A stretch of DNA of 64,000 bases from Lepidodermella squamata (GCA_047495785.1 JBLDXI010000015.1:620001-684000); one strand, 5' to 3'; numbered from the stretch's first letter, positions 2,479 to 56,769 are shown. A program made the numbers and translations. The notes: generated by a model from the sequence alone, not told the origin.

Positions 2479-2680
2479 GGAAAGCAAACACCTCACTACA
2501 CGAAATGAACCGTCAACAAAATAATACCTAGTACCAACCCATTTTCAACAAATGAATAAAATATATTTGAAAAATTGCTCATTTTACCAGCTCGTTCGTC
2601 AGGTACTTTTTTGTTAAACAAAAAAAAACAACAACAAAAACAACAACAACAACTTGAATTGGAAAAAATTGAAATTAGAA

Positions 2681-2925
2681 AAATTGCCATCGAACCTGGC
2701 AACAAAATATGTCCTGGGCAAACCACAGCTATTCTCGGCGGTGTTTATTAGAAACGATCGAGCAAGGATTCTGATCTGAAGAGTCGTAGGAAGTCTCTAT
2801 AGTCACTGTTGTTGACGGCTCTTTTACAAACTGTGCGGCATCGCCAGTTTTGCCGAGAAGTACGGAGTCTGATAAGTGCACGCGTGATGTCCTATCTCAA
2901 CTGGATAAAAACTAATATGACCTGA
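2681..2925 (+). pseudogene. Collapsed relic of a protease paralog
   Basis: 2681-2745 resembles the [20 protein letters not shown] exon; about 2810-2925 resembles the last exon of copy 2 (9350-9470) with indels; the middle of the gene is missing. Confidence 0.7.
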
Positions 2926-3061
2926 GAAGTGCACCATTTTATTTTGCTACGAAAATATCGAAAATCGAAATTCAATTGATTCCTTTTAATTTGATTATAA
3001 TTCCTGTTTTTTTCAAATAAAGACGATTATTATCTCTCATTTGACTATATGCATATTCGGG

Positions 3062-3198
3062 CAGTGGTTCTCAAAACTTTCGAGGCTGTGAATGAAAAGT
3101 GGCACGGCAAGGGTTTAGCGTCGTGCCATTCCGAGATTTTCCAGCACCTTGAGGTACCTTGAATCGCAGTGTTCCACCAAATCGCCGTGTTGAGAATG
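3062..3198. mobile_element. Degenerate hAT-like MITE
   Basis: Starts CAGTGGTTCTCAAA (hAT/Charlie-like terminus) and ends near GTTGAGAA, a partial inverse. Confidence 0.35.
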
Positions 3199-3518
3199 GT
3201 AATACGATGAGTTGTATAACATGTTTTCTGTGTGTTATCAAACTCAAAGAATGGAACATCATAAAAAAGTTAGTTCGCTATTTCACTCTCTTTCGTGCAC
3301 TTTGTCACAGTCTCTAACTAGCTCACACGCAGTCTTGTCCGGGTGTTATCTGTATCAGTAAGCAAATATAGGCGACTGCATATGGCATGAATGATAGTAT
3401 TCCTGGCATTGAATCATACGCTTATCTGCAAACACCAGTTAGGAGTTTCCCCCCACCCACACGCTTTGCATGCTATATTATTTTGCTATTTTGTCTGAAA
3501 GCCTTTTCTTACTTAATA

Positions 3519-4868
3519 ATGCTCACGTTGGTCTCGATTTTTCTACCCGCAATTTCGTGTGTGCCCATAGTCAGCGCTCAATGGATCAACGCTGGAGGCG
3601 ACCATGCGCATACAGGCTTCAAAAATGAAAGCATCGGCTCATCACCATCGAATTTTAAAAGTCCAAAAAAGTGGGAGACTGAACTTCAGGGATTGGATTT
3701 CGTGAACCCAACCCAGTTGCTGGTTTACGACAACAACGTCTTCGCGCTCAATGACAACGGAATGCTGTTTATCCTAGACGCTTCCGCTGGCACATTGCTG
3801 AAGAGCATCCAGTTGCCAAATTTGGACAAAGGCACTACCAATACCAATAGGCTGTTCCTACAGAGCTTGATATCAAAATTCGACGACACCTATTACATGT
3901 ACATCCGGTGCGATGCGAAAGTCGATGAATTCACGATTACTAACACGTATCGATTCGATATTTCGGCGCAGAAAGTCGTCGATTTTTGGCGAGCAAACCA
4001 CTCCAGCCCAATTGAAAGCTCTTTCGTCAGCTCAGCTAGTGATTTTTGGTATTCGATCTCGCCTTCGCAGCTTAGTTCAGTCGCATATTTTTACACCAAC
4101 ATCGCGGGAGCTCCTTATATACAAGTTGCTTTGACAGGATTCGAAATTTTCGCATCTTCAGTCAGCACGGACAATCGGTTATTTGTAAGTCACGCCTTTT
4201 CCCTAACTGAATTGAACCCACAAACTGGAGAGATTGTCCAAACCCTGCAATTCCAAGACACGAAAGAGCAAGGAGCGACAGCTCTGCCCTTTACACCAGT
4301 TGTGTCGAACAACCTAGCCGTAGTCCTGAGCGCGACGTGCCCTGCTGTGGGCTGTTCAATTAACATGCATGGAATCGACTTATCAACTCCTGGTAAAATG
4401 GCTCAAAAATGGCGGACAAATGACGTTTTTACGGACCCAAAAGACTGTGACAGCATCGCAACGGATGGCAAATCGATTTTCCTTACTGACCGGTCGAAAT
4501 TTGCCCTGGTTGAGTTGAACTTTGCGACTGGTGCCATAGTTAACACCCATGTCTGCGGAAAGATCGGTAGCAAAATAAGTTTGCAGCCTCGAACGATCGT
4601 TTTGGCGGATTACGTAATTTCCGAGGCTTGCAACGCCGTCTCGGTGTTTGACCGATCGCAGAAGAAGTTTGTTGCCCAGAATCTAGGATCCGGCGATGGG
4701 CTTACTTACTACAAAAAGAAGGTTTTCTTCCGGATGACAGAATCGACTAAGAACGCGAGGATTCTAAGCTACGAACTTGATGCCTCGCAACCTGCTAAAG
4801 GTTCTTCGCTAAGCTTGAGTGTGATGCTGATTTTCGCTTCCATTTTCGCTACAAATCTTATTCAGTGA
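3519..4868 (+). CDS. Secreted, probably GPI-anchored PQQ/BamB-like beta-propeller protein, copy 1 (intronless)
   Basis: Signal peptide MLTLVSIFLPAISCVPIVSA; QWINAGGDHAHTG motif; blade repeats LFILDASAGTLL, LTELNPQTGEIV, LVELNFATGAIV; hydrophobic C-terminal tail SLSVMLIFASIFATNLIQ. Confidence 0.8.
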   Translation: MLTLVSIFLPAISCVPIVSAQWINAGGDHAHTGFKNESIGSSPSNFKSPKKWETELQGLDFVNPTQLLVYDNNVFALNDNGMLFILDASAGTLLKSIQLPNLDKGTTNTNRLFLQSLISKFDDTYYMYIRCDAKVDEFTITNTYRFDISAQKVVDFWRANHSSPIESSFVSSASDFWYSISPSQLSSVAYFYTNIAGAPYIQVALTGFEIFASSVSTDNRLFVSHAFSLTELNPQTGEIVQTLQFQDTKEQGATALPFTPVVSNNLAVVLSATCPAVGCSINMHGIDLSTPGKMAQKWRTNDVFTDPKDCDSIATDGKSIFLTDRSKFALVELNFATGAIVNTHVCGKIGSKISLQPRTIVLADYVISEACNAVSVFDRSQKKFVAQNLGSGDGLTYYKKKVFFRMTESTKNARILSYELDASQPAKGSSLSLSVMLIFASIFATNLIQ

Positions 4869-6703
4869 ACAAAAAAATAAACTATGAGATGCTAATAGGC
4901 TAGTTTAAAGCGATCGAGTGGCGAGGTTCAATCTTTGACAATTTCAAGGTTGAGTTCAGCGAATCAATTCAGCGGATTTCTTTTCTTAAAGTTTGGCCCC
5001 TCCTTTATTAAAATGAGCTGATGCTTTCCCGTCCGAACACTACTTTTGTTCATTCCAATCACAGTCGCCGCGAACTTCTGATCTCGTCATTAATCTCAGC
5101 ACCAAATAACTCAGCGGCATTTCATATTAATGTTATCAACAACTGAGGGGAATATTGACGATTCAAACCTAGCTTCAAATGAAATGCGAAATAATTTTAA
5201 AATTAACAATTAACAATTTTTTTTAGCTATTGATTGATTGCTTGTTAACATTAATTTTTGTGGCAACCTAACCCGAAATTGAAATTGAAAAAATCCCAGG
5301 TGAAATTTAAATAAGCGTGCGAGCGATACGAGGAGCGAGGACAATTTTCTAATTTGACACTAAGAAACGACGTATTACTAAGAAAAAGATAACCGTCCTG
5401 GGGTTATATTTCGGATCTCGCGCCTCGATTTGCAAGCCGGCAGTGGACGCATTGCGCAATTTAGGAATCGGCAAACCGACCATCCATCGAATCCTTTCGG
5501 AAATAGCCTATCGCAGCAGCAAGATGATCAATTCTTTCCTCTACGAACCCGTTAAATGAAATAATCCTTAACCTTAAAACACACATCCAAAGAAATTCTA
5601 GTTACTCCAGTGTCGTTATGGCAACTGTTATTTATAAATAACAGCGGGCTTTTATTGTTTATAACAATAAAATATATATACTTATTACGTATTACGTATT
5701 ACTTCTTAAAAATGAGAAAGGCCTCGGGTTATTCCCAGAAATTCCCCAGAAATTTTTCCCACAGGGTGACTTTGATCTCTTGAAAAACCCGGCCTACTGC
5801 CTACTATAGACAGTAGTTGAATGTCTTTGAAGGTTGCTAATAATTCTTGCACCAACATTTGTGTTCAATTAGTTCTTCTTTTAGTACTTATTTTGCCACA
5901 CAAGAGAAAAGAGGGAAGTGTAATTTGTTGTCTGAAATGAGTTTTTGTGCCCCAAACGAACTCATCATATCTAAAATGCTTGCTCATGAACACGAGTGCA
6001 TCACAAGCTAGGCTCACTGCCGCCCGCCACCGGCTACCTTCAATGAGCAAAGCCTCGCCGGGCTTCCGAGCACTGGGAGGTAGATTGAACTTATTGCTAA
6101 GCAACAGGCTTAACTGTGAAAGGACTGCCCATCTCTCCATTTATTTTATTTTCAACAATCTCAATAATGCAGCTTACTAGCGTAATCTTAATAGTGTTAG
6201 TATTTGCTCATCAATGTAAAGCCTGCAAGCCATCGGCTTCCAATTCTTTAAGTATAATCCAGTCTCAGCTAGCAGGGGTTGAACTCAACAGTGGTCATGC
6301 TTACCGAGCACAACGTTCGGATCAAGAAAAGAGCTTTCAGGGCAAATGCGGCAAAAATATGTTAATTTTTAACTCGACCAACGTGTTTTCGGCTGGAGTT
6401 ATCGGCGGAGCCCCGGCTCCACTTCACAAGTGGGCATGCTTATTTCCCCAATGAATAAGTCATCATTTTGAGAATCCTAGGTACCCCTGGCTTGCTCGCC
6501 TACAAATAACAACCAGTTTCGAATCAGATAATAGACGAGCATTCACACCAGCCCCGACAATCTCTTACATAGGCGCTGTTATCATTGACAATCGCTACCT
6601 TCTCACGTCTGCCGTAGCAATCCTGTAAATCTGATTTTGGCTGATTAGCAACGATGAGCATCGATCCTTTTTACAGGAAACTTGGAATTGAACCTGGCAC
6701 AAA
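3572..6703 (+). repeat. Segmental duplication, donor copy (matches 13713-16844)
   Basis: Appears identical at offset 10141, including intergenic DNA; identical ORFs in the track. Confidence 0.95.
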
Positions 6704-9470
6704 GTTTTACCCTGGGCAAATCAAGGCGATTTTCGGCGATGTCGACTTGACTACAACTGAGCCAACCGAATTTTCTATTCTAGCTGAAGATTACACGTGG
6801 CACCCGTTATTCACAACCAAGCCGACGTTGAATTATGATTTCGCCATCATCAAACTGTCGAAACGTCTCAAATTCAAGGGCAACTGGGCAGTACAGAAAA
6901 TCTGCCTGCCAGCTTCTTGCTCCGACGAATGCAACGAGGCTGGTAGCAGAGTTTTCATAGCTGGTATGACAGGAAGAAAATTATCAATGAGTATCAGTCG
7001 TCATTTTATGTCACTAGGTTGGGGTGCCAACAACGACTCATTGGCGAAACCTTCATACTCTCTGCAAGAAACATCCTTAAATATCGTTCAACGCTGGCGA
7101 TGCGCTCTGGGGCTTTTGTCCTCATTAACCGACGAAAAGCTGTGCGCCGAAGGATCATCAACGCTCGGGCCTAGGCGTTATGACGAAGGATCACCTCTTG
7201 TATACATGAATGGATCGAATTACTTGCTTTGTGGTACACTCTCCACGTATATCCAGTCACCACCCTTTAGTGCTTAGTAAGTTATTATTGCAACCTCAAC
7301 AGGCATCCTTTGTGCGCTAGAACTTCATTCAATTGTTGGATTATGATCACTTCTGTTATCGTTAGCATCGTCAAACTCGGATTTTAGCTTGTTTACATCT
7401 TGCATCCGTATTAAGGTGACGGGTGACATGTAAAAACAACCATTCACTTACTTCACTTAACCCTAATGTCATCAGGGTTTTAAAAGTTAGAAATTATAAT
7501 TCTAGCGCTCGCGTTTGCTCTGTTCTACCGTGGATTCGTAACGTGATGGCCCAAAAAAACGCAGCGATACCACCCGCGCCGACAGGCTTCAGTGAATGCG
7601 GCCACTCCAAGTACTTTCACTACATTGACTATCCCGGCTTCGGAATCACAGGCGGTACAATAGCTTTACCAGGCCAGTTTCCGTGGTACGTTTCATTGCA
7701 CGAAATGCTGCTGCCAATGCTTTATCCATCATATATGCAAGGTACGTTCGACTGCATGTTATTACGACTGACGGGACAACGTATCTCTGCGGTGGAAGTA
7801 TTATCAGCACAAAGTAAATCCGTACAACAGCAACAACACTTTTAGAATTATGCCATTTTCGCTACAGTTATATCTTGACCGCTGCTCACTGCTTCGATAA
7901 TCCCGGCAAAACGTTTTTGTAAGATTTTTGAATATTTTAATTCATTGATGACGATACTTCCTACAACATCCGATTAATGAGACGCGGCGCCTCGATTTAA
8001 ACGCCTGATTTGTGTGCCATTTTTAAACAACGTTCAACGGTCATTGCGGCAAAAAATTACCTCATTAGCAGCGACCGTTATTTCTCTTCTGGGACAAGCA
8101 AAAAATCTCATTAATGAACATCGCGTCTATTCGCAAGGATCAGTGTTTTGCAGTGGCCTGAAGATCTCGATCTTGAAGAAACGGCGGGCCTTAGAGAAAA
8201 TTTCATAACGAACTTTCTCTATAGCGAATGCCGCGAGGTGGCCCGCTCGTGCGTCAACACGGGCATTTTACCATCGTTACGAACCCGAATATTTTAGTGA
8301 ATTTTTATTTGAAACTAGGGATAAGAATTCCAAATCAGAAATCTTGTCGTCAGAATAGAGCCACAGTGCCGATAATGAGGAAAACTTCAAAAAAAGTCAA
8401 GAAAATTCCAATAAAGTCAATTATAGCAACCCCGGTTGCAGTGAACTATCGCTATAGCGAACGTTTTTTTCTGGCATTATACGAGTTCGTTATAACTATT
8501 TACACTGTATATATGAAATGTTTACCTTTCATACTTGGTACACATGGTTCGTGATGATCAGAGAGAGTTCAGAGGTCCTATAAGCCCACTTGAGGCCCAA
8601 TAATATCATCGGAAACCATGTTCTCAGTTTAGGCCCAGACCAAGCAAGTCCATATCATTAAGGCCAGAAATATGGTTGACGGATGAAATAAGACGCACGA
8701 GTGTATTACATGAGAAAAATATTCCCTTATCATTCGCAGACACGTCAAAGTATTCTTTGCTGAGTGGAACAGCACAGATACGACTGAGATCGATCGATTT
8801 CAAATGACTTCCATATTCGTGAAGCTCCACGCGCTATACAACAACCAGACCGACGAAAACGATATAGCTCTGATAAAATTGCCAAGTGAAAGAAATTAAA
8901 ATTAATCTAATTCGTTTCGAATGATGCAATTAAAAACTTACAGACCATTTGAAATTTGACGTCGATTGGAATGTACAACCAGTTTGCCTCCCATCTTCAG
9001 CTACCGACGATTGTCCTGTTGGAACCAAAATGACTGTCGCAGGTAGTTTATTAGTATAAAGGATTTTCTGTTGTACTTACATCTCTGATAGGATTTGGAC
9101 GAACGAACAATAAAGGCGAAGAATCTGATGTGCTACGCTGGGTAACTACACCTATTGTTAGCAAAGGGACTTGTCAAAGATCTTATCCAAACCATCCTAT
9201 CTACGATTCGATGCTATGTACAGGTAAATTTCCAGTTTTAAATAAGGAATCTCAACATCTTGCAATTTTAATTTTCGATGCACGACAGGTTACGCAGGCT
9301 CAGGGCCAGATTCCTGCCAGGGTGACTCAGGTGGTGGTCTCTTTTCAGCAAAAGATGGCTACTACAAACAGTGCGGCATTGTCAGTTTCGGCGATGAGTG
9401 CGGGTACAAGTACGGAGTCTACACCCGCGTAGCGTCGTATCTCAACTGGATAGAAGCTAATATGACATGA
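6167..9470 (+). CDS. Two-domain S1 serine protease, copy 2 (apparently intact; trypsin-like S1 Asp)
   Basis: Signal peptide [19 protein letters not shown]. Domain 1: [15 protein letters not shown] (inactive). Domain 2: [31 protein letters not shown] at 9468-9470. Confidence 0.9.
8195..8512. mobile_element. Tc1/pogo-type MITE remnant in an enlarged protease intron
   Basis: Right end GAGTTCGTTATAACTATTTACACTGTA, with subterminal TATAGCGAA/ATAACGAA motifs; left end unclear. Confidence 0.45.
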
Positions 9471-10050
9471 GAAGAGCAAGCAATTTTATGTTGTTACGAA
9501 AATATCAAAAATCAGAATTTTATATTTACTTCTATTTTTTCAAAGCTGCATATAATTCCTGCTTTTGCAAATAAAGAAAACTATTTTCTCTCGTTTGAGC
9601 GCGAAGCAAGATCGTCATATTAGAGGTCCAACCTTTTCGGCCAAAGGTTTTTTTTTGAGGGGCCATGCGAACTTGTGTGGAGAGTGGGGTCAATTCGGTT
9701 TCTGCAGTCCATCCGCAGCACAAAATCGATTAAATGGCTTTTAGCTTTAACAATTTACTTGGTGTATTTTGTACCACCATGTATAAGTAGAAGTGTTGTT
9801 TTGTCCGAAATTAGTTTTAATGAACTCAACGAACTCATCATATCCAAGTTATTTAGTTATTTACAAATACCGCTCGTGAACATTACCGGGTACCCTTTTC
9901 GCCGCCCGCCAACGGCGTCCTTTAATTAACTGAGCCGCTTGGGCCACCAAATAATGGCAGTGTTTTTCGACCCTGAGCCCTGAGTAACAGTAATAACTCA
10001 TCAGTAACTCAACAGTAATGCCACCAACATTCATTTTTCCGAATATCAAA

Positions 10051-12769
10051 ATGCAGCTTGTCAGGTTCATTTTTGTTACGCTCGCTCTTGCTCAGAATGA
10101 GGCATGTAAGCCATCCACCCCCTATTCGATAATTTCAATCCAGACTCAGCTAGCGGCGGTTGAACTCAACAGCGGTTCGGCTTACCGAGAAGAACGCTCA
10201 GGTCAGGAGCGGCGCTTCCAAGGCAAAAACATCTTCATTTTCAATTCGAGCAACGTGTGGTCTGATCGAGTGGTCGGCGGGTCCTCAGCCCATCTTTACA
10301 AGTAAGACTGCGCAACTCGAAGATTTCTTCTTCAGTTTTTTCAAACTTCTAAGGTACCCTTGGCTAGCTCGCTTGGAAGTAACTACGAGTTTCCTGCATG
10401 TTGACAGACGATCAACAACACCCCAGCCGATAACGTCTTCTATTAGTGCTGTTATCATCGATGAAAACTACCTCCTAACCTCTGCATGGGCTATATTGTA
10501 AACCAATTCATATTTAATGAACGAAAATGACTCATCGTTTCAGGAAAATCGGGATTGAGCCTGGTACCAAGTTCTATCCCGGGCAGATAAAAGCGGTTTT
10601 CGGCGAAGTGGACCTGACTACAACAGAGCCAACTGAATTTTCTGTTCTAGCCGAGGATTACACGTGGCACCCCTTATTCACAGCCGAACCTTTGCTCTAT
10701 GATTTCGCAATCATCAAACTGTCCAAGAGGCTCAAGTTCAAGGGTAACTGGACAGTACAGAAAATCTGAGTTGTTATTGCTGGTAAGATTTGTTGAAAAG
10801 TCGAGGTATATCAGTCAACTTTTCGCTGTCGTTAGGTTGGGGCTCTAACAGCGACATTACAGAGGTTAAACCTTCAAACCTGTTGCAGGAAGCTTATTTA
10901 TACATTGCTGATCGCGGAAGATGCGCCAAAGAGCTCAACGGAACAGCACTGGCATCCACTGACGAAAAGCTGTGTGCAGAAGGATCGGAAACGATAGGAG
11001 CGAGGCCTTATGACCAAGGGGCGCCGCTGGTCTACACAAACGGCTCGAGTTACATGCTTTGCGGAACCTATTCCAACTCTGTAGAGGGGAAATCAATCAG
11101 TGCGTAGTAAGTGATGAAAGAATCAGAGTATTTCTCTACGGCTAGCTACAGTTTTACATTTATGCTTAATTATAATCCGACAAACTTTCATTTGACCGCA
11201 AAAGGCTTATTGTTAGCCTTAGCGTTGTGCCGTTTACCATTTACTGTTTACCGCACAGGAAAACAATGGCTAAATTGCTTTACCGTCAACCAGGTCGCTA
11301 TGCCGCGTACCTGGCGGTCAATTACGAATTCTAAATACGTTTAAACACTTGCTTCTTTATTTTAGCGCTCGGATTTGTTCCGTCTTGCCGTGGGTCTACA
11401 ATGTGATTGGCCAGAAAAACGCCGCGATACCACCAGGGCCTGTTGGCGAAAGCGAATGCGGGCATTCAAAATACTTCAACAGCCATGGGGCGCCGGGAAA
11501 CGCAATCACAGGTGGTTCAATAGCGTTGCCGAACCAGTTTCCGTGGTACGTCGCGTTTCTGATTTACTATTTGCCTCTATGTTGTCTCTGTGGTCATTGA
11601 AAGGTACGTTAGACTAGAGGTTACCTATACCAATGGGTCAATCTTTACGTGCGGTGGAACTATCATCAGCGAAAAGTAAATCCGAAAATTATAATGATAG
11701 AGTATCAATCACCTTTATTTGTGTTAGTTATATCCTATCAGCTGCTCACTGCTTCGTGCTACGTGGAATAGCTTTAAAGTAAGATTTACTCAACGTCGAT
11801 ACAATTAATGATTCATTTATATAGTAATGGGTTTAAATCCTCCTTAGCAGACATTGAAGCATCTTCAGCCTAGTTTTTTCTGTCAATTTCTAGAATTGAA
11901 CCAATCTTTCAATTTCCATGCTAGTCTTCAAACGATTTTTGGGGTCCTAGAAGGTTTAAGTTAAGGAAGCTCTGATTTAAGTATCTTCGTCGACCGTTGA
12001 TTGGACCTGTTGAATGGTTGAATATTATTCGTAGGTCCGTCGATGTGTTCTTCGCTGAGTGGAACAGAACAAGTTCGACAGAACCCGGAGTTTTTAGAAT
12101 GACGTCGCCAGCTTCGAATGTCAAAGTTCACGAGCATTACAACGATCAGACCGTTGAAAATGACATCGCATTAATAAAATTGCCTGGTAACATTCAAAAA
12201 AATTGTTATCCAAGCTTGAAACTCAAATTTCGGACTATTTGGATTTTTCCATTGATTGGAACGTCGAACCGGTTTGCCTTCCGAAGTCGGCTACTGACGA
12301 TTGTCCTGTTGGAAAGCGCGCAGGAAAATGTACAAGTTCGAAATTCAGAAGAATAACGGCACGCTAGGGGTTGGATATTCGTGGTGCGTAGAATAAAAGG
12401 CGAAATTTTCTTATTTTCGCTTTGTCATTGGTATTTCAAGTTTCTTTTAAATTTGAACAGAAGTTTTCCCTGAAATGTTCAACATCACCCCAAAATAGCC
12501 TAAAATAGCGCGCCTAAAATAGCTATTTCTAGTTTATTTTTTATTTGTTTATAATTCATAAAAAATGGATTTTGAACATTTACACAGGTTTTGAGGGTTC
12601 CGGGCCTGCTACCTGCCAGGGTGATTCAGGCGGTGGTCTTTGGTCGACGAAAGATGGCTACTACAAACAGTGCGGCATCGTCAGTTACGGCCAGCAATGT
12701 GCATATCGGTACACAGTCTTCACCCGCGTTATTTCGTATCTCGATTGGATTCGTGAAAACCAAAAATGA
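10051..12769 (+). pseudogene. Two-domain S1 protease, copy 3, disrupted
   Basis: 9-bp deletion removes CGK in exon 1; 45-bp deletion creates TGA at 10767-10769; an exon is truncated near 12315 and the following GFG...ICT exon is missing. Confidence 0.85.
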
Positions 12770-13059
12770 GGAAACAATATTAAAATAAATGAGGAAAGCC
12801 ATGCATTTCTTGCGTAAAAAAATTATGAACATACAAGGACATCGAAATATCCATGAAAGTGAATCTTACCCAACATGCATCTATTGAAAATAAGGATCGA
12901 ATCATTCGATAAGCATCGTCGATGAACTGTTATTGAATCACTTGAAAGTTCTGGTTATCGCTCTGGCTTCCGCCCGCAACCTAGGTGACCCTGCTCCCTA
13001 CCGTCACGTGTTTTTGTGCGCTACACCCTATGCGGTATAAAATTTAATAGATTCTTGAG

Positions 13060-13330
13060 AAACTTGCAGTGGTCGAGTACTCGTTTAAACACAACTTGAG
13101 TGACACTTCACGCGAATTCGGCTGCGATCCAAAACGCATTCGTGAGTGGCGACAGCAGGATGAGCGATTAAGTGAGATGGAGCCAGAAGCTAAGCAACTA
13201 CTGTGACAAAATATAACCGAATCGAGAGTCTAACAAATCGCCCATCTCTGTTAGTAGCCCACTTTTTTGGACTTTTTTGGGGTTTGAAAATTTAGTAGCC
13301 CCGGCTGCTATTAAAACAAATACGACGGTA
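13060..13330 (+). mobile_element. pogo-like transposon remnant (Brinker-type DNA-binding domain plus right end)
   Basis: Translates KLAVVEYSFKHNLSDTSREFGCDPKRIREWRQQ (Brinker-type HTH as in pogo/POGK); ends TAGCCCCGGCTGCTATTAAAACAAATACGACGGTA. Confidence 0.7.
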
Positions 13331-14119
13331 TTCCTTTGGCCGCTATTCTCTATTCCGAAAAGATTTTACTCCACTATCAGGCGTAAATATTCGCTGATTT
13401 GACTTTCTGTCGTGCACTTTGTCACAGTCTATAACTAGCTCACACGCAGTCTTGTCCGGGTTTTTTCTGTATCAGTAAGCAAATAGGCGACTGCATATGG
13501 CATGAATGATAGTATACCTAGCATTGAATCATACGCTTATCTGCAAACACCAGTCCGGAGTTTCCGCCCACCCACACACTATGCAAGCTATATAAAACAG
13601 ACGACAGGGAAAGTGCATTGCACTTATTATTTTGTCTCAAAGCCTCTCCTTACTCAATAATGCTAAGGTTGGTCTCGATTTTTCTACTCGCAATTTCGCA
13701 TGTGCACATAGCCAGCGCTCAATGGATCAACGCTGGAGGCGACCATGCGCATACAGGCTTCAAAAATGAAAGCATCGGCTCATCACCATCGAATTTTAAA
13801 AGTCCAAAAAAGTGGGAGACTGAACTTCAGGGATTGGATTTCGTGAACCCAACCCAGTTGCTGGTTTACGACAACAACGTCTTCGCGCTCAATGACAACG
13901 GAATGCTGTTTATCCTAGACGCTTCCGCTGGCACATTGCTGAAGAGCATCCAGTTGCCAAATTTGGACAAAGGCACTACCAATACCAATAGGCTGTTCCT
14001 ACAGAGCTTGATATCAAAATTCGACGACACCTATTACATGTACATCCGGTGCGATGCGAAAGTCGATGAATTCACGATTACTAACACGTATCGATTCGAT
14101 ATTTCGGCGCAGAAAGTCG
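13288..14119 (+). repeat. Duplicated segment (matches 16842-17673)
   Basis: Appears identical at offset 3554; AAA microhomology at the junction 16842-16844. Confidence 0.9.
13589..13596 (+). promoter_or_regulatory. TATA box of propeller copy 2 (equivalents at 17143-17150 and 20424-20430)
   Basis: TATATAA(A) about 65-70 bp upstream of the ATG, positionally conserved in diverged copy 4. Confidence 0.55.
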
Positions 14120-15009
14120 TCGATTTTTGGCGAGCAAACCACTCCAGCCCAATTGAAAGCTCTTTCGTCAGCTCAGCTAGTGATTTTTGGTATTCGATCT
14201 CGCCTTCGCAGCTTAGTTCAGTCGCATATTTTTACACCAACATCGCGGGAGCTCCTTATATACAAGTTGCTTTGACAGGATTCGAAATTTTCGCATCTTC
14301 AGTCAGCACGGACAATCGGTTATTTGTAAGTCACGCCTTTTCCCTAACTGAATTGAACCCACAAACTGGAGAGATTGTCCAAACCCTGCAATTCCAAGAC
14401 ACGAAAGAGCAAGGAGCGACAGCTCTGCCCTTTACACCAGTTGTGTCGAACAACCTAGCCGTAGTCCTGAGCGCGACGTGCCCTGCTGTGGGCTGTTCAA
14501 TTAACATGCATGGAATCGACTTATCAACTCCTGGTAAAATGGCTCAAAAATGGCGGACAAATGACGTTTTTACGGACCCAAAAGACTGTGACAGCATCGC
14601 AACGGATGGCAAATCGATTTTCCTTACTGACCGGTCGAAATTTGCCCTGGTTGAGTTGAACTTTGCGACTGGTGCCATAGTTAACACCCATGTCTGCGGA
14701 AAGATCGGTAGCAAAATAAGTTTGCAGCCTCGAACGATCGTTTTGGCGGATTACGTAATTTCCGAGGCTTGCAACGCCGTCTCGGTGTTTGACCGATCGC
14801 AGAAGAAGTTTGTTGCCCAGAATCTAGGATCCGGCGATGGGCTTACTTACTACAAAAAGAAGGTTTTCTTCCGGATGACAGAATCGACTAAGAACGCGAG
14901 GATTCTAAGCTACGAACTTGATGCCTCGCAACCTGCTAAAGGTTCTTCGCTAAGCTTGAGTGTGATGCTGATTTTCGCTTCCATTTTCGCTACAAATCTT
15001 ATTCAGTGA
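13660..15009 (+). CDS. Beta-propeller protein, copy 2 (chimera: copy-3 promoter and signal peptide, copy-1 body)
   Basis: 5' part matches copy 3; mature sequence and 3' flank match copy 1. Confidence 0.85.
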   Translation: MLRLVSIFLLAISHVHIASAQWINAGGDHAHTGFKNESIGSSPSNFKSPKKWETELQGLDFVNPTQLLVYDNNVFALNDNGMLFILDASAGTLLKSIQLPNLDKGTTNTNRLFLQSLISKFDDTYYMYIRCDAKVDEFTITNTYRFDISAQKVVDFWRANHSSPIESSFVSSASDFWYSISPSQLSSVAYFYTNIAGAPYIQVALTGFEIFASSVSTDNRLFVSHAFSLTELNPQTGEIVQTLQFQDTKEQGATALPFTPVVSNNLAVVLSATCPAVGCSINMHGIDLSTPGKMAQKWRTNDVFTDPKDCDSIATDGKSIFLTDRSKFALVELNFATGAIVNTHVCGKIGSKISLQPRTIVLADYVISEACNAVSVFDRSQKKFVAQNLGSGDGLTYYKKKVFFRMTESTKNARILSYELDASQPAKGSSLSLSVMLIFASIFATNLIQ

Positions 15010-16844
15010 ACAAAAAAATAAACTATGAGATGCTAATAGGCTAGTTTAAAGCGATCGAGTGGCGAGGTTCAATCTTTGACAATTTCAAGGTTGAGTTCAG
15101 CGAATCAATTCAGCGGATTTCTTTTCTTAAAGTTTGGCCCCTCCTTTATTAAAATGAGCTGATGCTTTCCCGTCCGAACACTACTTTTGTTCATTCCAAT
15201 CACAGTCGCCGCGAACTTCTGATCTCGTCATTAATCTCAGCACCAAATAACTCAGCGGCATTTCATATTAATGTTATCAACAACTGAGGGGAATATTGAC
15301 GATTCAAACCTAGCTTCAAATGAAATGCGAAATAATTTTAAAATTAACAATTAACAATTTTTTTTAGCTATTGATTGATTGCTTGTTAACATTAATTTTT
15401 GTGGCAACCTAACCCGAAATTGAAATTGAAAAAATCCCAGGTGAAATTTAAATAAGCGTGCGAGCGATACGAGGAGCGAGGACAATTTTCTAATTTGACA
15501 CTAAGAAACGACGTATTACTAAGAAAAAGATAACCGTCCTGGGGTTATATTTCGGATCTCGCGCCTCGATTTGCAAGCCGGCAGTGGACGCATTGCGCAA
15601 TTTAGGAATCGGCAAACCGACCATCCATCGAATCCTTTCGGAAATAGCCTATCGCAGCAGCAAGATGATCAATTCTTTCCTCTACGAACCCGTTAAATGA
15701 AATAATCCTTAACCTTAAAACACACATCCAAAGAAATTCTAGTTACTCCAGTGTCGTTATGGCAACTGTTATTTATAAATAACAGCGGGCTTTTATTGTT
15801 TATAACAATAAAATATATATACTTATTACGTATTACGTATTACTTCTTAAAAATGAGAAAGGCCTCGGGTTATTCCCAGAAATTCCCCAGAAATTTTTCC
15901 CACAGGGTGACTTTGATCTCTTGAAAAACCCGGCCTACTGCCTACTATAGACAGTAGTTGAATGTCTTTGAAGGTTGCTAATAATTCTTGCACCAACATT
16001 TGTGTTCAATTAGTTCTTCTTTTAGTACTTATTTTGCCACACAAGAGAAAAGAGGGAAGTGTAATTTGTTGTCTGAAATGAGTTTTTGTGCCCCAAACGA
16101 ACTCATCATATCTAAAATGCTTGCTCATGAACACGAGTGCATCACAAGCTAGGCTCACTGCCGCCCGCCACCGGCTACCTTCAATGAGCAAAGCCTCGCC
16201 GGGCTTCCGAGCACTGGGAGGTAGATTGAACTTATTGCTAAGCAACAGGCTTAACTGTGAAAGGACTGCCCATCTCTCCATTTATTTTATTTTCAACAAT
16301 CTCAATAATGCAGCTTACTAGCGTAATCTTAATAGTGTTAGTATTTGCTCATCAATGTAAAGCCTGCAAGCCATCGGCTTCCAATTCTTTAAGTATAATC
16401 CAGTCTCAGCTAGCAGGGGTTGAACTCAACAGTGGTCATGCTTACCGAGCACAACGTTCGGATCAAGAAAAGAGCTTTCAGGGCAAATGCGGCAAAAATA
16501 TGTTAATTTTTAACTCGACCAACGTGTTTTCGGCTGGAGTTATCGGCGGAGCCCCGGCTCCACTTCACAAGTGGGCATGCTTATTTCCCCAATGAATAAG
16601 TCATCATTTTGAGAATCCTAGGTACCCCTGGCTTGCTCGCCTACAAATAACAACCAGTTTCGAATCAGATAATAGACGAGCATTCACACCAGCCCCGACA
16701 ATCTCTTACATAGGCGCTGTTATCATTGACAATCGCTACCTTCTCACGTCTGCCGTAGCAATCCTGTAAATCTGATTTTGGCTGATTAGCAACGATGAGC
16801 ATCGATCCTTTTTACAGGAAACTTGGAATTGAACCTGGCACAAA
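13713..16844 (+). repeat. Segmental duplication, recipient copy of 3572-6703
   Basis: Appears identical; ends inside protease exon 3. Confidence 0.95.
16308..16844 (+). pseudogene. 3'-truncated duplicate of protease copy 2 (exons 1-2 and start of exon 3)
   Basis: Matches 6167-6703, then switches to the sequence starting at 13288. Confidence 0.9.
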
Positions 16845-17213
16845 TTTAGTAGCCCCGGCTGCTATTAAAACAAATACGACGGTATTCCTTTGGCCGCTAT
16901 TCTCTATTCCGAAAAGATTTTACTCCACTATCAGGCGTAAATATTCGCTGATTTGACTTTCTGTCGTGCACTTTGTCACAGTCTATAACTAGCTCACACG
17001 CAGTCTTGTCCGGGTTTTTTCTGTATCAGTAAGCAAATAGGCGACTGCATATGGCATGAATGATAGTATACCTAGCATTGAATCATACGCTTATCTGCAA
17101 ACACCAGTCCGGAGTTTCCGCCCACCCACACACTATGCAAGCTATATAAAACAGACGACAGGGAAAGTGCATTGCACTTATTATTTTGTCTCAAAGCCTC
17201 TCCTTACTCAATA

Positions 17214-18569
17214 ATGCTAAGGTTGGTCTCGATTTTTCTACTCGCAATTTCGCATGTGCACATAGCCAGCGCTCAATGGATCAACGCTGGAGGCGACCAT
17301 GCGCATACAGGCTTCAAAAATGAAAGCATCGGCTCATCACCATCGAATTTTAAAAGTCCAAAAAAGTGGGAGACTGAACTTCAGGGATTGGATTTCGTGA
17401 ACCCAACCCAGTTGCTGGTTTACGACAACAACGTCTTCGCGCTCAATGACAACGGAATGCTGTTTATCCTAGACGCTTCCGCTGGCACATTGCTGAAGAG
17501 CATCCAGTTGCCAAATTTGGACAAAGGCACTACCAATACCAATAGGCTGTTCCTACAGAGCTTGATATCAAAATTCGACGACACCTATTACATGTACATC
17601 CGGTGCGATGCGAAAGTCGATGAATTCACGATTACTAACACGTATCGATTCGATATTTCGGCGCAGAAAGTCGACGATTTTTGGCGAGCGAACCACTCCA
17701 GCGAACTCCAAACCTCTTTCGTCAGCTCGGCTAGTGATTTTTGGTATTCGATTTCGCCCTCACAGCCTAATTCAGTCGCTTATTTTTTCACAAACATTGC
17801 GGGAGCTCCTTATATCAGTGTCCCAGTTGCTTTGGCTGGATTTGAAATTGACGCATCTTCAGTCAGCACGGACAATCGACTGTTTGTAAGCCACGCCTAT
17901 TCCCTAACTGAATTGAACCCGAATACTGGAGAGATTGTCCAAGCCTTTCAATTCCAAAACATGAAAGAGCAAGGAGCGACATCTCTGCCCTTCACGCCAG
18001 TTTTGTCGAACAACTTAGCCGTAGTCCTAAGCATGACTTGCACTACTGTGAGCTGTTCAATTAACATGCATGGAATCGACTTATCAACTCCTGGTAAAAT
18101 GGCTCAAAAATGGCGGACAAATGACGTTTTTACGGACCCAAAAGACTGTGACAGCATCGCAACGGATGGCAAGTCAATTTTTGTAACTGATCGAACGAAG
18201 TTTGCCTTGGTTGAGTTGGACTTTGCGACGGGTGCCATAGTTACCACCCATGTTTGCGGGAAGATCGGTAGCAAAATGAGTTTGCAGCCGCGAACGATCG
18301 TTTTGGCGGATTACGTGATTTCCGAGGCTTGCAATGCCGTCTCGGTGTTTGACCGATCGCAGAAGAAGTTTGTTGCCCAGAATCTTGGGTCTGGTGATGG
18401 GCTTACTTACTACAAAAAGAAGGTTTACTTCCGGGTAACAGAATCGACTAAGAACGCGAGGATTGTAAGCTACGAACTTGATGCCTCGCAGCCTGCTGCT
18501 AAAGGTTCTTCGCTAAGCTTGAGTGTGATTCTGATTTTCGCATCCATTTTCGCTGCAAATCTTATTTAA
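17214..18569 (+). CDS. Beta-propeller protein, copy 3
   Basis: Intact intronless ORF with signal peptide and hydrophobic tail; diverges from copy 1 after 17673. Confidence 0.85.
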   Translation: MLRLVSIFLLAISHVHIASAQWINAGGDHAHTGFKNESIGSSPSNFKSPKKWETELQGLDFVNPTQLLVYDNNVFALNDNGMLFILDASAGTLLKSIQLPNLDKGTTNTNRLFLQSLISKFDDTYYMYIRCDAKVDEFTITNTYRFDISAQKVDDFWRANHSSELQTSFVSSASDFWYSISPSQPNSVAYFFTNIAGAPYISVPVALAGFEIDASSVSTDNRLFVSHAYSLTELNPNTGEIVQAFQFQNMKEQGATSLPFTPVLSNNLAVVLSMTCTTVSCSINMHGIDLSTPGKMAQKWRTNDVFTDPKDCDSIATDGKSIFVTDRTKFALVELDFATGAIVTTHVCGKIGSKMSLQPRTIVLADYVISEACNAVSVFDRSQKKFVAQNLGSGDGLTYYKKKVYFRVTESTKNARIVSYELDASQPAAKGSSLSLSVILIFASIFAANLI

Positions 18570-18679
18570 ATAAACTAAACAAATGCCAGTTTATTTAAGC
18601 TGCAATCAAATTCATTATCAAGTTCAGCGAATAAATTAAGCCGATTTCTTTATACCTTTGGCTTTCCAATAATGATTTA

Positions 18680-19090
18680 CAGTCGCTCGCATTCCACATC
18701 ACAGCTATATTTGTATTTCTTCTAATAAGACTCCGACACTCCTCTTCGCTTGTGAAAGTTGGAATGCAACCGCAGCTCACCAACTGAGGCTGGATGTTGT
18801 GCAGATGAGGTGGCTTAGGGCTAGAGCAAACGTCACAGTTATGGATAAAATCAGAAATGAGAAATGAAGACATAAGAAAAATCTGTGAAGGTATAGAACC
18901 TATCTCAGCTCAGAACATATCCGACTTCCTTTCTTAGGGAACATTCTTAGAATGAATGACGATAACCTAGTCAAGCAAACATACTTATGGACCCCACCGA
19001 AGGGCTGGTAGTGGAAGTTAGGCAGGACCAGAGTAGGATGGGATTTGGGCCTCAAAATGCCCCACCAGTTTGAGGATCCTACTTAACGCA
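18680..19090 (+). mobile_element. Decayed RTE-clade LINE 3' fragment
   Basis: Frameshifted translation ACESWNATAAHQLRLDVVQMRWLRA..VTVMDKIRNE..LGNILRMNDD, homologous to the 25094-25585 ORF. Confidence 0.7.
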
Positions 19091-19420
19091 CTGAGATGAA
19101 CGATCTATTGGAAATCACCGTCTAGGCGGCTTCTCGTGTCGATAAGAACCAGCCCAACACGCCAAAATTCCGGTCAAAGTGGTCATTAAGCCCAATGGAA
19201 GGCCGTCCAAGATAATGCTGTTCGTGTATCATGAAAGTGCAACGCCTCTCGGATCCCGAACATCTACGGAAACAAGGCTAATAGCTCTCTGCGATAAAAG
19301 CCTCTTCAACAGACCTCTTAAATTCGAAGTATGCCTCGATTGCTGAGGAACTTATCAATTACAAAGCTCATTAGAATATTCCAAGTTCTGTTCCGATTGT
19401 CACACAACGTCATTTTTTCG

Positions 19421-19497
19421 GGCTCATACTTACGTCTAATTAATTGCGTCTGCATAGCCGCTATGCAGACGCAATTAATTAGACGTAAGTATGAGCC
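19421..19497. repeat. Perfect 38-bp inverted repeat with 1-nt spacer (hairpin or collapsed MITE)
   Basis: GGCTCATACTTACGTCTAATTAATTGCGTCTGCATAGC-C-GCTATGCAGACGCAATTAATTAGACGTAAGTATGAGCC. Confidence 0.9.
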
Positions 19498-20487
19498 ATC
19501 GGGGCGTTTTCAACTTACATGGGTGGCCTAGCGCCTAGCGTCTGCAGATTCATTTAATGATACCAGGTACATTTTGTGGTCCCTTATGGATAATTTTCTA
19601 AAATTAGCCAAAAATTGTTATATTTGGTGCTATTGGGCAAAATTGCCACTCTTCTGCCACAGTTGGCTCGTCCGGTGATTTTTTAAAAAATTTGAAAAAA
19701 TTAGTTTATCCCCGTTGATAAATTTCTTTATCCGACGATATAACATTTGTAGGGTAAAATATTTTATTTCGATTTTCCGATTTTTTCCTAGCTCGAAAAG
19801 TATTATTTGCTAGAATATTTCTGAAAATAGCAGCGCTGTGAGAGAATTCTAAGTCAAATATGCACTGCCTTTCATGCAGGGTGCGATATTGGATCGCGGA
19901 GCTGTCAGTGATGGAACTTTTCTTTTTGCTGTTTTTGTCAAAACTGAAAATCGAGCGAACAGAGAAAATTGTGAAGATTTTCCACTACCTCTAAACCTCT
20001 AACAACCTCTAAAACCTTTTAAAATGAGCAAAACAGTGGGATACATTCGAAATTTATCGTCTGGCCCGGCCTAGCTAGAAGTCCACCTGTCTCCATGAAA
20101 GTCGCACACTGCTTCGGTGCTTTGTTCACCCTTGTCACAACCAACTACAAGCTTACATCTGTAACAACGAGCGAGCAGGATCCTCGAACTAGGAAATATT
20201 TCGAGCTAGTGTTTTATGACCCTGTGGTCTTTTCAGTGTTTTTTAGCTTGGCCTGCCGACCTGGGGGTACGATACCCCTCATTCCCCCCGTACTTCGCGC
20301 CTTAGCTCATAACTAGCTTAAACGCAGTCATCTTGTCCGGGTCTTGTCCGGGTATGCGAATTAAATCATGCTTATCTGCAAACACCATTTCGGAGCTTTC
20401 GCCAACCCGCACACTACCCAGGCTATATAATAGGCGGCATAAAAATTGCATCGCACTGTTTGTCCTACATTCTTATCCTGAATAATA

Positions 20488-21830
20488 ATGAGATTACTCT
20501 CATTCTTTCTACTGGTAGTTTCGTTTACAGACGCTCAATGGATCAACGCTGTATGGCGGCGACCATGCACATACAGGCTTCAAGAATGAAACCATCGGGT
20601 CTCAACCTAAAGGTAAAAAAATTTGGGAGACCGAACTGCAGAGCTTGGATTTCGTGAACCCAGCTCAGTTGCTGGTTTATGACAACAACGTCTTCGCGCT
20701 CAATGACAACGGAATGCTGTTTATCCTAGACGCTTCCGCTGGCACATTGTTGAAGAGCATCCAGTTGCCAAATTTAGACCCAGCCGATGATAACAATAGG
20801 CGTTTTCTACAGAGCTTGATATTGAAATCTAACGACGTCTATTACATGTACATTCGATGCGATGCGACAATCGGTGGATTCCTGATTACGAACACTTTTA
20901 AATTCGATATTTCAGCCCAGAAAGTGGTAGATTCTTGGCGAGGGAACGACTCCGGCGTCGTATCACGCTCTTTCGTTGGGTCAGCCAGTGATTTTTGGTA
21001 TTCGATCTCGCCCTCGCGACGTGATTCAGCCGCGTATTTTTTCACCGACATCTTGGGTGCTCCTTATATTACAGTCCAAGTTGCTCTGACAGCATTTGAT
21101 ATTTATGCTTCTTCAGTTAGCACGGACACTCGTCTATTTGTGAGTCGTGCCTATTGCCTAACAGAATTGAACACGAAAACTGGAGCGGTTGTCCAAGTCC
21201 TGCAATTCCAAGAAATGACAGAGCAGGGAGTGGCATCTCGGCGATTTACACCGGTATTGTCGAACAACATAGCCATAGTTCAAAGCATGACATGCATCAA
21301 GGAATGTTCAATAAACCTGCATGGAATCGACCTGTCAACGCCTGGGAAAATGTCGCAAAAATGGCGGACTAATGCAGGCTTAAAGCATACAGAGGACATG
21401 GACGGCATAGCAACTGATGGCAAGTCGATTTTTCTTACTGACCGAACGAAGTTTGCCCTGGTTGAGTTGAACTTTGCGACGGGTGCCATAGTTACCACCC
21501 ATGTTTGCGGGAAGATCGGTAGCAAAATGAGTTTGCAGCCGCGAACGATCGTTTTGGCGGATTACGTGATTTCCGAGGCTTGCAATGCCGTCTCGGTGTT
21601 TGACCGATCGCAGAAGAAGTTTGTTAACCAGAATCTTGGATCCGGGATCCGGTGATGGGCTTACTTACTACAAAAAGAAGGTTTTCTTCCGGATTACAAA
21701 ATTGGCAAAGAACGCGAGGATTATAAGCTACGAACTTGATGCCTCGCAGCCTGCTGCTAAAGGTTCTTCGCTAAGCTTGAGTGTGATTCTGATTTTCGCA
21801 TCCATTTTTGCTGCAAATCTTATACAGTGA
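20488..21830 (+). pseudogene. Beta-propeller protein, copy 4, with two frameshifts
   Basis: ATG 20488 (MRLLSFFLLVVSFTDAQWINA); 4-bp insertion GTAT near 20551; 7-bp tandem duplication GATCCGG near 21639-21652. Confidence 0.85.
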
Positions 21831-55617: not shown

Positions 55618-56769
55618 TGCAAGATAATCTCTTTTCCAAATATATGCTACGAGCGTGAAAGACGACCTCAAAATGCTCGCGCTGATCAATAAGCGCGTGG
55701 GCTTTTAGCGCATTTCCTATTAGCGCTTCGAGTCAAATGGTAACGGTATATTTCGAGGCGTCAATTCTAAGATGGAAGTATTATTTACATTTTGGCGTGT
55801 TGCCTGGCTCCCATTTCCCTACCAAAAAATTCGACCCCAGATTATTAATCTTTCTTCTTTCTTGAATATATGTCATTGAATTCTAAGATCATTGGTCAAT
55901 ATCCCGATTTTTTCTGGCTCATACACATTACGTAATACCCAAAAAACGTTGACTCATATTTGAGTAGACGGCGATACGCTGCATGAGTATATGTATATGG
56001 CATCAGGTTCTTTGAATAAATAATAACATATGTATACGACCTTCAAGCTCAAAAAGTTCTATACTCACTTATGAGTATTTTGCGCTAGGTTGGAAACATT
56101 ACAAGACCAAATTGTACAGCAATCATGTGGTTTCGAGGTTTTATATTGTTGAAAAGACTCTACCAGCGATTTTTTAGATTTTTTCTCTCGGAAAACGTGA
56201 CCAGTAAAATTAAGCTGATTTGCAGGAAAAATACTTTGAAACATGGCGCATGTTGTAGTGGCGAAATAAAAATAGATGTCTTGTTCCCAAAATCGATAAT
56301 CAGTGAATTCTTCGGGAAGGAATGAGTATAAGGTGATTTTGACTTCAGATCATTTTTTACTCAGAAGGCTAGATGTCGGCCTAACAAAGTCATGCGACAA
56401 CTTTGGGATGAAATGAAGCCTACGAACCCACAAAGCAAGCGCGCAAGCCTGTAAAAAGCTGAAACTTGTTTTCCGTAGCATACATTAACGGGAAAACAGA
56501 GTAATCACGGGAGGTTACCGATATTCAGACACTGGTTGGCGAACTTTAATATGCACCGATAGTGCTGAAGCGCTATAACTATCGAACTACTGCGATCGAT
56601 CTGTGAAAACAGCCAATGTACTTGATGGGTCGATTTTGCAACAACCGAAGCATTCAACATCAACGAACTGTTAGTCTCATGAGATCAATCCGCACGGTAG
56701 GCTACGGGCTACGGGCCGCGATTGAAATATAAATTGTTGGGTTTTAGTCAAATCGTCATCAAGCTTTTC

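Follow-up and report, generated by a model that had tools for sequence, protein, structure and literature searches.

Beta-propeller proteins of the PQQ_2 type (Pfam PF13360), among them BamB (YfgL), are otherwise typical of bacteria and archaea and are missing from most animals. They consist of eight blades with repeats of the A/L-x-[DN]-x-x-[TS]-G-x-x-x-W type, carry a W...G...[HR]-T-G motif that directly follows the signal peptide, and comprise about 380 to 450 amino acids (aa). The same features are seen in a family of proteins encoded in the genome of the gastrotrich Lepidodermella squamata. Four copies of the respective gene are found in a 64,000-nucleotide (nt) stretch of its contig C15 (GCA_047495785.1, JBLDXI010000015.1, positions 620001 to 684000), which is referred to below as the window; unless a contig is named, coordinates are counted from the first letter of the window.

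Large, fast-evolving families of surface proteins are the means by which many invertebrates build their recognition repertoires, usually on immunoglobulin (Ig), leucine-rich repeat (LRR), lectin, or scavenger-receptor folds. In L. squamata, the scaffold appears to be a PQQ_2/BamB-type propeller. The best overall explanation of the data, with a probability of roughly 0.6, is that of a large resident family of secreted propellers that, in the clade that includes the window copies, are tethered by a glycosylphosphatidylinositol (GPI) anchor, form a non-catalytic surface binding repertoire, and are expressed under the control of a GATA-type factor, with the GPI-tailed clade having arisen within the lineage. 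The literature searches turned up no account of such a family from animals or protists, and the paper on the L. squamata genome mentions neither horizontal transfer nor PQQ-type genes (PMC11660948).

A secreted eight-bladed propeller of the PQQ_2 type

Membership in the PQQ_2 family was assigned with the family profile because the window copies taken alone fall under the Pfam cut-off (18 bits for a window copy, against 27.6). The PQQ_2 model is matched by 11 of the 17 paralogues, with the best E value of 7.2e-16. When compared with solved structures, a profile of 13 paralogues matched BamB with an E value of 8.2e-9 and PQQ alcohol dehydrogenases with E values of about 1e-3; there was no other family type below E = 0.2. 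The AlphaFold (AF2) model of the protein is an eight-bladed propeller of about 32 to 35 strands, with a predicted local distance difference test score (pLDDT) of 77.6 and a predicted template modeling score (pTM) of 0.77. Foldseek matches of this model included BamB (1.4e-13) and tetrathionate hydrolase (1.7e-13, template modeling [TM] score of 0.62). VIA-align placed YxaL first (Z score of 29.7), ahead of WD40 domains with eight blades and of BamB (Z = 27.1), and also returned tetrathionate hydrolase (Z = 24.7). The top structural matches, namely, BamB, tetrathionate hydrolase, Tako8, YxaL, and Cdc4/Fbw7, are all eight-bladed. The fold alone leaves PQQ-like and WD40 propellers unseparated, but the sequence profiles separate them. 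The family consists of secreted eight-bladed propellers; their PQQ_2/BamB type had been proposed in the first-pass annotation, a reading of the DNA made without database searches.

The sequence pattern from which that proposal started, W-x3-GGD-x2-HTG followed by repeats of the L-x-x-L-[DN]-x-x-[TA]-G type, is also present: the window copies have W-I-N-A-G-G-D-H-A-H-T-G directly after the signal peptide, and the repeat is clear in three blades. The signal peptide of the window copies is ∼21 aa long; it has a hydrophobic core, and V-S-A precedes the cleavage site. The signal peptides end in A-x-A-like sites (V-S-A|Q and A-H-A|D), with no L-x-x-C lipobox directly preceding the mature end. Each intact window copy ends in an 18-aa hydrophobic stretch that is followed by only 1 to 3 residues and preceded by a segment rich in Ser, Gly, Ala, and Asp. 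Such a layout is typical of predicted GPI-attachment signals and differs from that of transmembrane anchors, which are followed by a cytoplasmic tail. The mature window protein contains six cysteines, including the family-wide C346 and C371, with no adjacent cysteines; C346-C371 and a T-C-x5-C pair are putative disulphides. It also contains sequons; cysteines together with sequons fit an extracellular protein. The eukaryotic signal peptide, GPI-type tail (judged by inspection of the sequence), and TATA box described in the first-pass annotation were all recovered, and poly(A) signals can be added to them.

Several more specific assignments were tried and rejected. The BamB equivalog models TIGR03300 and NF008351 give 19 to 29 bits, against cut-offs of 285 and 423, and do not match the window copy at all; with the lipobox also missing, the protein is not a true BamB orthologue. 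Quinoprotein dehydrogenases do not qualify either: the gastrotrich proteins are too short (440 to 460 aa) and have no vicinal Cys-Cys, and PF01011 is matched by 2 of the 17 members, with a best E value of 2.7e-4. The broadly distributed metazoan proteins of the EMC1, FAM234, and ITFG types, which as closest homologs would have refuted the first-pass proposal, are not the relatives. EMC1_N is matched by a single member of the 17 (E = 0.0016) and FAM234 and FG-GAP by none, and PQQ_2 dominates. The ACSF4 model is matched by three members (best E value of 2e-6), far under its 133-bit cut-off.

Gene family, tandem array, and upstream signals

Searches of the L. squamata assembly (121.2 Mb in 151 contigs) gave 52 matches with copy 1 as the query and 49 with an outside relative as the query. 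Combined, the two queries define a minimum of 65 separate loci, spread over more than 15 multi-megabase contigs. Fifty loci were read at the sequence level, and the counts of open reading frames (ORFs), tails, and signal peptides refer to these. About 40 of them are intact single ORFs of 400 to 460 aa, 34 of which are distinct and carry the N-terminal motif; several others are fragments. Most of the ∼40 intact members begin with a signal peptide and terminate in a hydrophobic tail, in line with the proposed expansion as a surface family, whereas six or seven lack the tail and would be soluble. In most full-length members, as in the three intact window copies, the tail comprises 14 to 18 aa, leaves 0 to 3 residues to the end, and follows a segment rich in Ser, Gly, Ala, Asn, and Asp.

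A single-exon structure is typical of the family, so that the first-pass description of these genes as intronless holds for most of them, but it is not universal. Two divergent paralogues contain short GT-AG introns, one per gene and at different positions. The first is a 102-nt GT...AG intron (84% A+T) at C24:1458466-1458567, and the exon ends that flank it give the two halves of the conserved family motif T-G-x-[VI]-L-W. The second, at about C28:894600-894650, is 54 nt long and has the form GTAAG...AG. Codon usage in the family is close to that in the host exons, with third-position GC contents (GC3) of 0.51 and 0.50, respectively, and a correlation of relative synonymous codon usage (RSCU) of r = 0.72. 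The composition of the window is also host-like (GC content of about 42 to 43%). The window copies are flanked, on a multi-megabase contig, by animal genes that are spliced, as had been noted from the DNA; trypsin domains are split over many short ORFs. The ratio of nonsynonymous to synonymous substitution rates (dN/dS) is 0.27 between copies 1 and 3 and 0.27 to 0.49 in five other paralogue pairs (six non-saturated pairs in all), which indicates purifying but fairly relaxed selection. Given the spliced flanks, host codon use, dN/dS values of 0.27 to 0.49, and GT-AG introns in two paralogues, the window copies are resident animal genes.

The first-pass annotation counted four single-exon copies in the window. 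Copies 1 to 3 are indeed intact ORFs (Table 1), but copy 4 is broken by two frameshifts, a 4-nt insertion at positions 20550 to 20553, inside the N-terminal motif, and a 7-nt tandem duplication at positions 21638 to 21644. These two breaks aside, its frame is open as far as the common tail and stop codon, and copy 4 is a recently broken family member. The ORF of copy 1 reaches 44 codons 5′ of the conserved start, back to position 3387. Since this extension is not common to copies 2 to 4, the start was placed at position 3519, and the upstream segment (3387 to 3518) is probably untranslated. Two further copies lie upstream of the window, an intact one at C15:615733-617088 and one with a single TGA codon at C15:617855-619168, so the array has six members.

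The array bears clear marks of duplication at the DNA level. A 3.46-kb unit at positions 3274 to 6707 (plus strand), which includes copy 1 and about 1.8 kb of downstream DNA, is found again at positions 13390 to 16847 with 98.3% identity; segments 13288 to 15003 and 16842 to 18566 are a second pair of matching segments. Copy 2 is a mosaic, in which the upstream DNA and the first ∼130 coding nt are the same as in copy 3 and differ from copy 1, the next ∼300 coding nt are identical in copies 1 to 3, and the remainder is identical to copy 1. In addition, copies 3 and 4 share an identical block of 100 bp. The duplication and the mosaic identity blocks argue for tandem duplication with gene conversion or unequal crossing-over, and not for retroposition. 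The window copies form a tandem array that is young and subject to gene conversion, within a GPI-tailed clade specific to this genome, and the family has grown by tandem and segmental DNA duplication, with promoters carried along.

In all four window copies, a TATAT[AT]A sequence is found 45 to 71 nt 5′ of the ATG codon, and it is preceded, at a distance of 53 nt from start to start, by a 17-nt block that is invariant and contains a GATA core (C-TTATCT-GCAAACACCA). In copy 4, these elements are kept, though the surrounding upstream DNA is down to about 55 to 60% identity. The promoter of copy 1 alone differs from those of copies 2 to 4 by a 26-nt deletion 3′ of the TATA box. Among 34 genes of the family, a TATA-like box is found upstream of 11 (versus 8% of random windows), and a poly(A) signal follows the stop codon in 16 (versus a 16% background). 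The 250-nt upstream regions of the same 34 genes contain 76 WGATAR sites, compared with 28.5 ± 5.2 in shuffled sequences, an enrichment of about 2.7-fold; eleven permuted cores gave 18 to 45 sites each in these regions. A GATA-type factor probably drives the family. The GATA-ruled epithelia of other invertebrates are gut or epidermis (ELT-2 and Serpent-type regulation). The family-wide GATA sites suggest expression in an epithelium of this kind, probably gut or epidermis, and the presence of digestive protease genes among the neighbors is compatible with a gut setting.

Table 1. Propeller gene copies of the window and their associated signals
Feature	Position	Strand	Description
Copy 1	3519-4868	+	Intact gene, 449 aa, uninterrupted ORF, stop TGA
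Copy 1 signal peptide	3519-3581	+	
Copy 1 GPI-type hydrophobic tail	about 4800-4865	+	
Copy 1 promoter block	3421-3480	+	17-nt GATA-core element 3421-3437; TATATTA 3474-3480
Copy 1 AATAAA poly(A) signal	4876-4881	+	8 nt after stop
Copy 2	13660-15009	+	Intact gene, 449 aa, mosaic
Copy 2 promoter block	13536-13595	+	17-nt GATA-core element 13536-13552; TATATAA 13589-13595
Copy 2 AATAAA poly(A) signal	15017-15022	+	8 nt after stop
Copy 3	17214-18569	+	Intact gene, 451 aa, protein 92% identical to copy 1
Copy 3 promoter block	17090-17149	+	GATA-core element 17090-17106; TATATAA 17143-17149
Copy 4	20488-21830	+	Broken, about 77% identical to copy 1
Copy 4 promoter block	20371-20430	+	GATA-core element 20371-20387; TATATAA 20424-20430

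Other genes of the window belong to a variety of animal families. Trypsin-like serine protease genes with many short exons (280 to 12353, plus strand) are interleaved with the propeller genes, and a papain-family (cathepsin) protease is encoded at positions 43714 to 44394. Adjacent ORFs at 22775 to 24469 (plus strand) encode the C-terminal domains of Temptin (E = 8e-38) and of a copper type II ascorbate-dependent monooxygenase (E = 3e-8); they may be parts of a single gene, with a temptin-like module joined to a DBH/PHM-type monooxygenase. The minus strand at 49925 to 55689 carries a GC-richer (about 49%) run of ORFs with F5/8 type C (discoidin), LamG-like, and PAN domains, which is probably a single gene for a large lectin-like surface or secreted protein. 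Paralogous genes of Cys-loop ligand-gated channels are found on the plus strand at 30644 to 31366, 38671 to 39252, 57311 to 58090, and 62029 to 62673. In the assembly, the propeller genes are physically integrated in host DNA, between these trypsin-like, temptin/Cu-monooxygenase, channel, cathepsin, and lectin genes.

Relatives, origin, and predicted function

An exhaustive profile search of 1.84 billion representative sequences, a library that does not contain the family itself, returned 1020 proteins at E ≤ 1e-3 and 26 at E ≤ 1e-10. Sequenced animals included, the close clade comprises only about a dozen clusters at 50% identity. The best per-domain matches are a small set of proteins of 300 to 550 aa, namely, P0002 (122 bits), P0004 (78 bits), P0007 (72 bits), P0009 (70 bits), P0010 (64 bits), P0021 (57 bits), P0025 (52 bits), and P0075 (47 bits); P0003 scored 80 bits as a whole protein. 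The best single domains of prokaryotic type score 36 to 47 bits, compared with 122 for the best match of eukaryotic type. Taxon names were recovered for 5 of the 30 relatives that were looked up. P0003 comes from the foraminifer Bolivina argentea (EukProt); in this protein, a signal peptide and the propeller are followed by a Thr/Pro-rich stalk, a transmembrane helix, and a cytoplasmic tail. P0010 comes from the bdelloid rotifer Adineta ricciae, the only named animal match in this search, in which most matches carry no taxon label. The named prokaryotic matches, from Halovenus rubra and a Caldisericia bacterium, are annotated as “PQQ-binding-like beta-propeller repeat proteins.” In P0004, P0013, and P0025, the ORFs span only part of the propeller on contigs (5.0, 3.0, and 2.3 kb, respectively) that are long enough for the whole gene, a hint of introns and, hence, of eukaryotic sources. 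A soluble L. squamata paralogue (L021, C42:3608653-3609918) matches the Bolivina, Adineta, and environmental sequences of this close set over the full length with 138 to 197 bits. Word-index protein searches with copy 1, a mixed alignment, and L021 gave no useful matches, a blank without weight since known relatives were missed as well. Motif-limited scans, which are not proof of absence, found no close-clade members in 185,579 prokaryotic species genomes (GTDB) and no relatives in the JGI metagenome contigs.

In a maximum-likelihood tree that included 17 L. squamata sequences (13 GPI-tailed and 4 soluble) and outside sequences, the L. squamata proteins and the close set form one clade, with a Shimodaira-Hasegawa approximate likelihood ratio test (SH-aLRT) support of 98. 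The 13 GPI-tailed sequences are monophyletic (SH-aLRT 99), and the four soluble ones mix with the outside sequences (SH-aLRT 95). The GPI-tailed clade is sister to the soluble paralogues that group with the foraminiferan, bdelloid, and environmental sequences. Three propeller domains of giant metagenomic proteins fall outside the combined clade of L. squamata and close-set sequences, followed by ordinary prokaryotic propellers. The nesting of the window genes in a prokaryotic donor clade, which the idea of bacterial acquisition implied, is not seen: they group with sequences of eukaryotic type, and prokaryotes form the next layer out. Monophyly of all 17 L. squamata sequences was not rejected by the approximately unbiased (AU) test (p = 0.187).

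These relationships bear on the question of how the family entered the animal. Direct transfer of a bacterial or archaeal gene into the gastrotrich lineage, with eukaryotic signals and expansion coming later, was the proposal of the first-pass annotation. It is consistent with the makeup of the superfamily: among the 150 best matches, PQQ_2 propellers that carry the W-x-x-F-x-G-x-x-x-[HR]-T-G motif come overwhelmingly from prokaryotes, and the large clusters of similar proteins in the ESM Atlas are without exception bacterial or archaeal. Likewise, no ordinary metazoan relatives surfaced, models of the EMC1/FAM234 type barely match, and nearly all members have a single exon. However, the closest relatives are not prokaryotic, being a foraminiferan type I membrane protein, a bdelloid protein, and environmental ORFs. 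The gap in per-domain scores, the lack of close-clade members in the scanned prokaryotic genomes, the host-like codon use, and the introns of two members point the same way, so that this route now appears doubtful. A recent or direct bacterial transfer is not supported, as the nearest relatives are of eukaryotic type, introns are present, and amelioration is complete.

The same completed amelioration and the introns agree with an old eukaryotic or animal family that was inherited vertically, lost or diverged in most lineages, and expanded only here, as do the occurrence of relatives in a rhizarian, a rotifer, and L. squamata itself and the result of the AU test. Bdelloid rotifers are known for their abundant foreign genes, however, and the rotifer host is a bdelloid; with only about a dozen close-clade clusters in the entire library, the patchy spread would require very many losses. 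Vertical descent is an equally doubtful alternative. An old foreign origin, from a bacterium or a microbial eukaryote, is plausible, given that the family sits within the mainly prokaryotic PQQ_2 superfamily, and the rarity of the clade among sequenced animals together with its presence in a bdelloid makes one lean towards transfer. Both routes, old horizontal transfer and vertical descent accompanied by many losses, can be reconciled with the data. In our reading, the window genes appear to be a late product of expansion within the lineage, starting from soluble members that are common to a few other eukaryotes, with the mainly prokaryotic PQQ_2 superfamily as the ultimate source. A bolder and rather unlikely scenario is that a prokaryote-type propeller gene was passed among microbial eukaryotes and microscopic animals, such as the foraminifer, the bdelloid rotifer, and the gastrotrich, and in the last of these gained a GPI anchor and a GATA-driven promoter and multiplied to at least 65 genes, giving a hitherto unknown type of invertebrate surface receptor repertoire on a foreign fold, used for recognition in innate immunity or for binding of food or microbes.

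With respect to function, the N-terminal signal peptide would send each protein into the secretory pathway. In the window clade, the GPI-attachment-type signal would then anchor the propeller in the outer leaflet of the plasma membrane, so that one face of the rigid eight-bladed structure could be presented outwards. The propeller itself would be a non-catalytic binding module, without the marks of quinoprotein dehydrogenases or of true BamB, and the family would constitute a fast-turning, diversified repertoire of surface binding or recognition proteins. A GATA-type factor would drive its expression in an epithelium, gut or epidermis, and the GPI-tailed clade would have arisen within the lineage from soluble members common to a foraminiferan and a bdelloid rotifer. 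The family size, tandem birth-and-death, gene conversion, pseudogenes, moderate constraint, and coexistence of soluble and anchored forms fit a binding repertoire better than an enzyme, and a non-catalytic surface binding role is the most likely one.

Several points weigh against this reading. GPI anchoring, expression, and the protein product are all predicted from sequence alone, and the GPI signals were called by inspection and a simple hydropathy rule, not with a trained predictor. The structural model is poor at the N-terminal motif (pLDDT < 50 for residues 8 to 32). The designation of the close relatives as eukaryote-type comes from two named sequences and from sequence features. The baseline for the WGATAR counts consisted of shuffles and random windows, not of promoters of other genes, and some of the promoters are recent duplicates. 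Finally, binding has been favored over catalysis only because enzyme hallmarks are missing, while four polar residues, H31, Q115, R220, and D316, are invariant or nearly invariant across paralogues that are only 23 to 32% identical and could form an active site, and tetrathionate hydrolase, one of the best structural matches, is an enzyme.

These last two observations, along with the adjoining digestive protease genes, are what could be expected if the family consisted of extracellular enzymes, either hydrolases of the tetrathionate hydrolase type or cofactor-dependent oxidoreductases. The weak matches to PF01011, the lack of a vicinal Cys-Cys pair, and a length some 150 to 200 aa below that of quinoprotein dehydrogenases argue to the contrary, and a birth-and-death family of this size with dN/dS values up to 0.49 is more typical of recognition proteins; an enzymatic role is judged improbable. 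The other two alternatives concern the genes and not their products. Retroposition of an intron-containing host gene, the second route to single-exon copies offered in the first-pass annotation, would account for such genes lying beside spliced neighbors. This retrogene reading was rejected as very unlikely: the tandem copies share promoters and flanks through segmental duplication of DNA, the genome searches yielded no multi-exon parent (in either of the two members with introns, there is a single short one, and its position differs between them), and the 3′ ends lack poly(A) tracts. Bacterial contamination or an assembly artefact deserved consideration because the assembly was made from amplified DNA and 370 non-metazoan contigs were removed from it (PMC11660948), but its probability is negligible for genes that occur on more than 15 multi-megabase contigs between ordinary spliced animal genes, with host-like composition and codon use, eukaryotic signal peptides, GPI-type tails, TATA boxes, poly(A) signals, and introns.

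Significance and comparison with known propellers

The family of surface propellers proposed here would represent a prokaryote-type scaffold equipped with the secretion, anchoring, and promoter signals of a eukaryote, and it occurs in a phylum whose genomes have hardly been explored. If its origin is foreign, a single acquired gene has become one of the large gene families of the animal; if its origin is vertical, it is an overlooked family of eukaryotic extracellular propellers. In either case, it offers concrete genes for studies of tissue expression, GPI anchoring, and ligands in gastrotrichs. New in the present analysis are the finding that copy 4 is broken, the mosaic makeup of the array, the introns of two members, the separation of GPI-tailed from soluble clades, with names for some outside relatives, the AU test, and the GATA promoter signature.

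Among proteins with known structures, YxaL of Bacillus (PDB entries 7eq5 and 7dxn) is the best structural match, with 334 residues aligned at a root mean square deviation of 3.1. Similarly to the gastrotrich proteins, it is a secreted single-domain propeller of eight blades and similar size. In contrast to them, it is bacterial and has no membrane anchor, and the sequence identity is only 12%. Its own function is poorly defined, so that the similarity gives no mechanism. The quinoprotein alcohol and methanol dehydrogenases (PF01011) belong to the same superfamily and also have eight blades (Z scores of 21 to 23) but are about 560 to 700 aa long and possess a vicinal disulphide and ligands for metal and PQQ. 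EMC1, FAM234A/B, and ACSF4/AASDH are members of the same Pfam clan of propellers; however, these are single-copy intracellular or endoplasmic reticulum (ER) proteins, not secreted multigene families.

The most similar proteins are those of the close set, which includes Bolivina argentea EP01084_P105468/9, Adineta ricciae CAF1536409.1, and the environmental ORFs P0002, P0004, P0007, P0009, P0013, P0021, P0025, P0033, and P0075. Their homology to the gastrotrich family is full-length and collinear, with the shared motifs W-x-x-F-GG-x-x-x-H-T-G, W-[AT]-P-[TA]-V-Y, W-V-P-V, and A-T-D-G; a further motif, C-x-x-C-x-G-Q-P-[IV]-[IV]-T, is shared with the soluble L. squamata paralogue. Except for the Bolivina protein, with its mucin-like stalk, membrane-spanning helix, and cytoplasmic tail, these proteins are soluble. 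The window clade, in contrast, carries a GPI-type tail and no longer has the C-x-x-C-x-G-Q-P motif, and its identity to the close set is only 18 to 23%. Compared with the PQQ_2/BamB proteins of bacteria and archaea, the gastrotrich family has no lipobox signal and is distinguished by its eukaryotic signal peptide, paired cysteines, GPI-type tail, and expansion into a large animal family.

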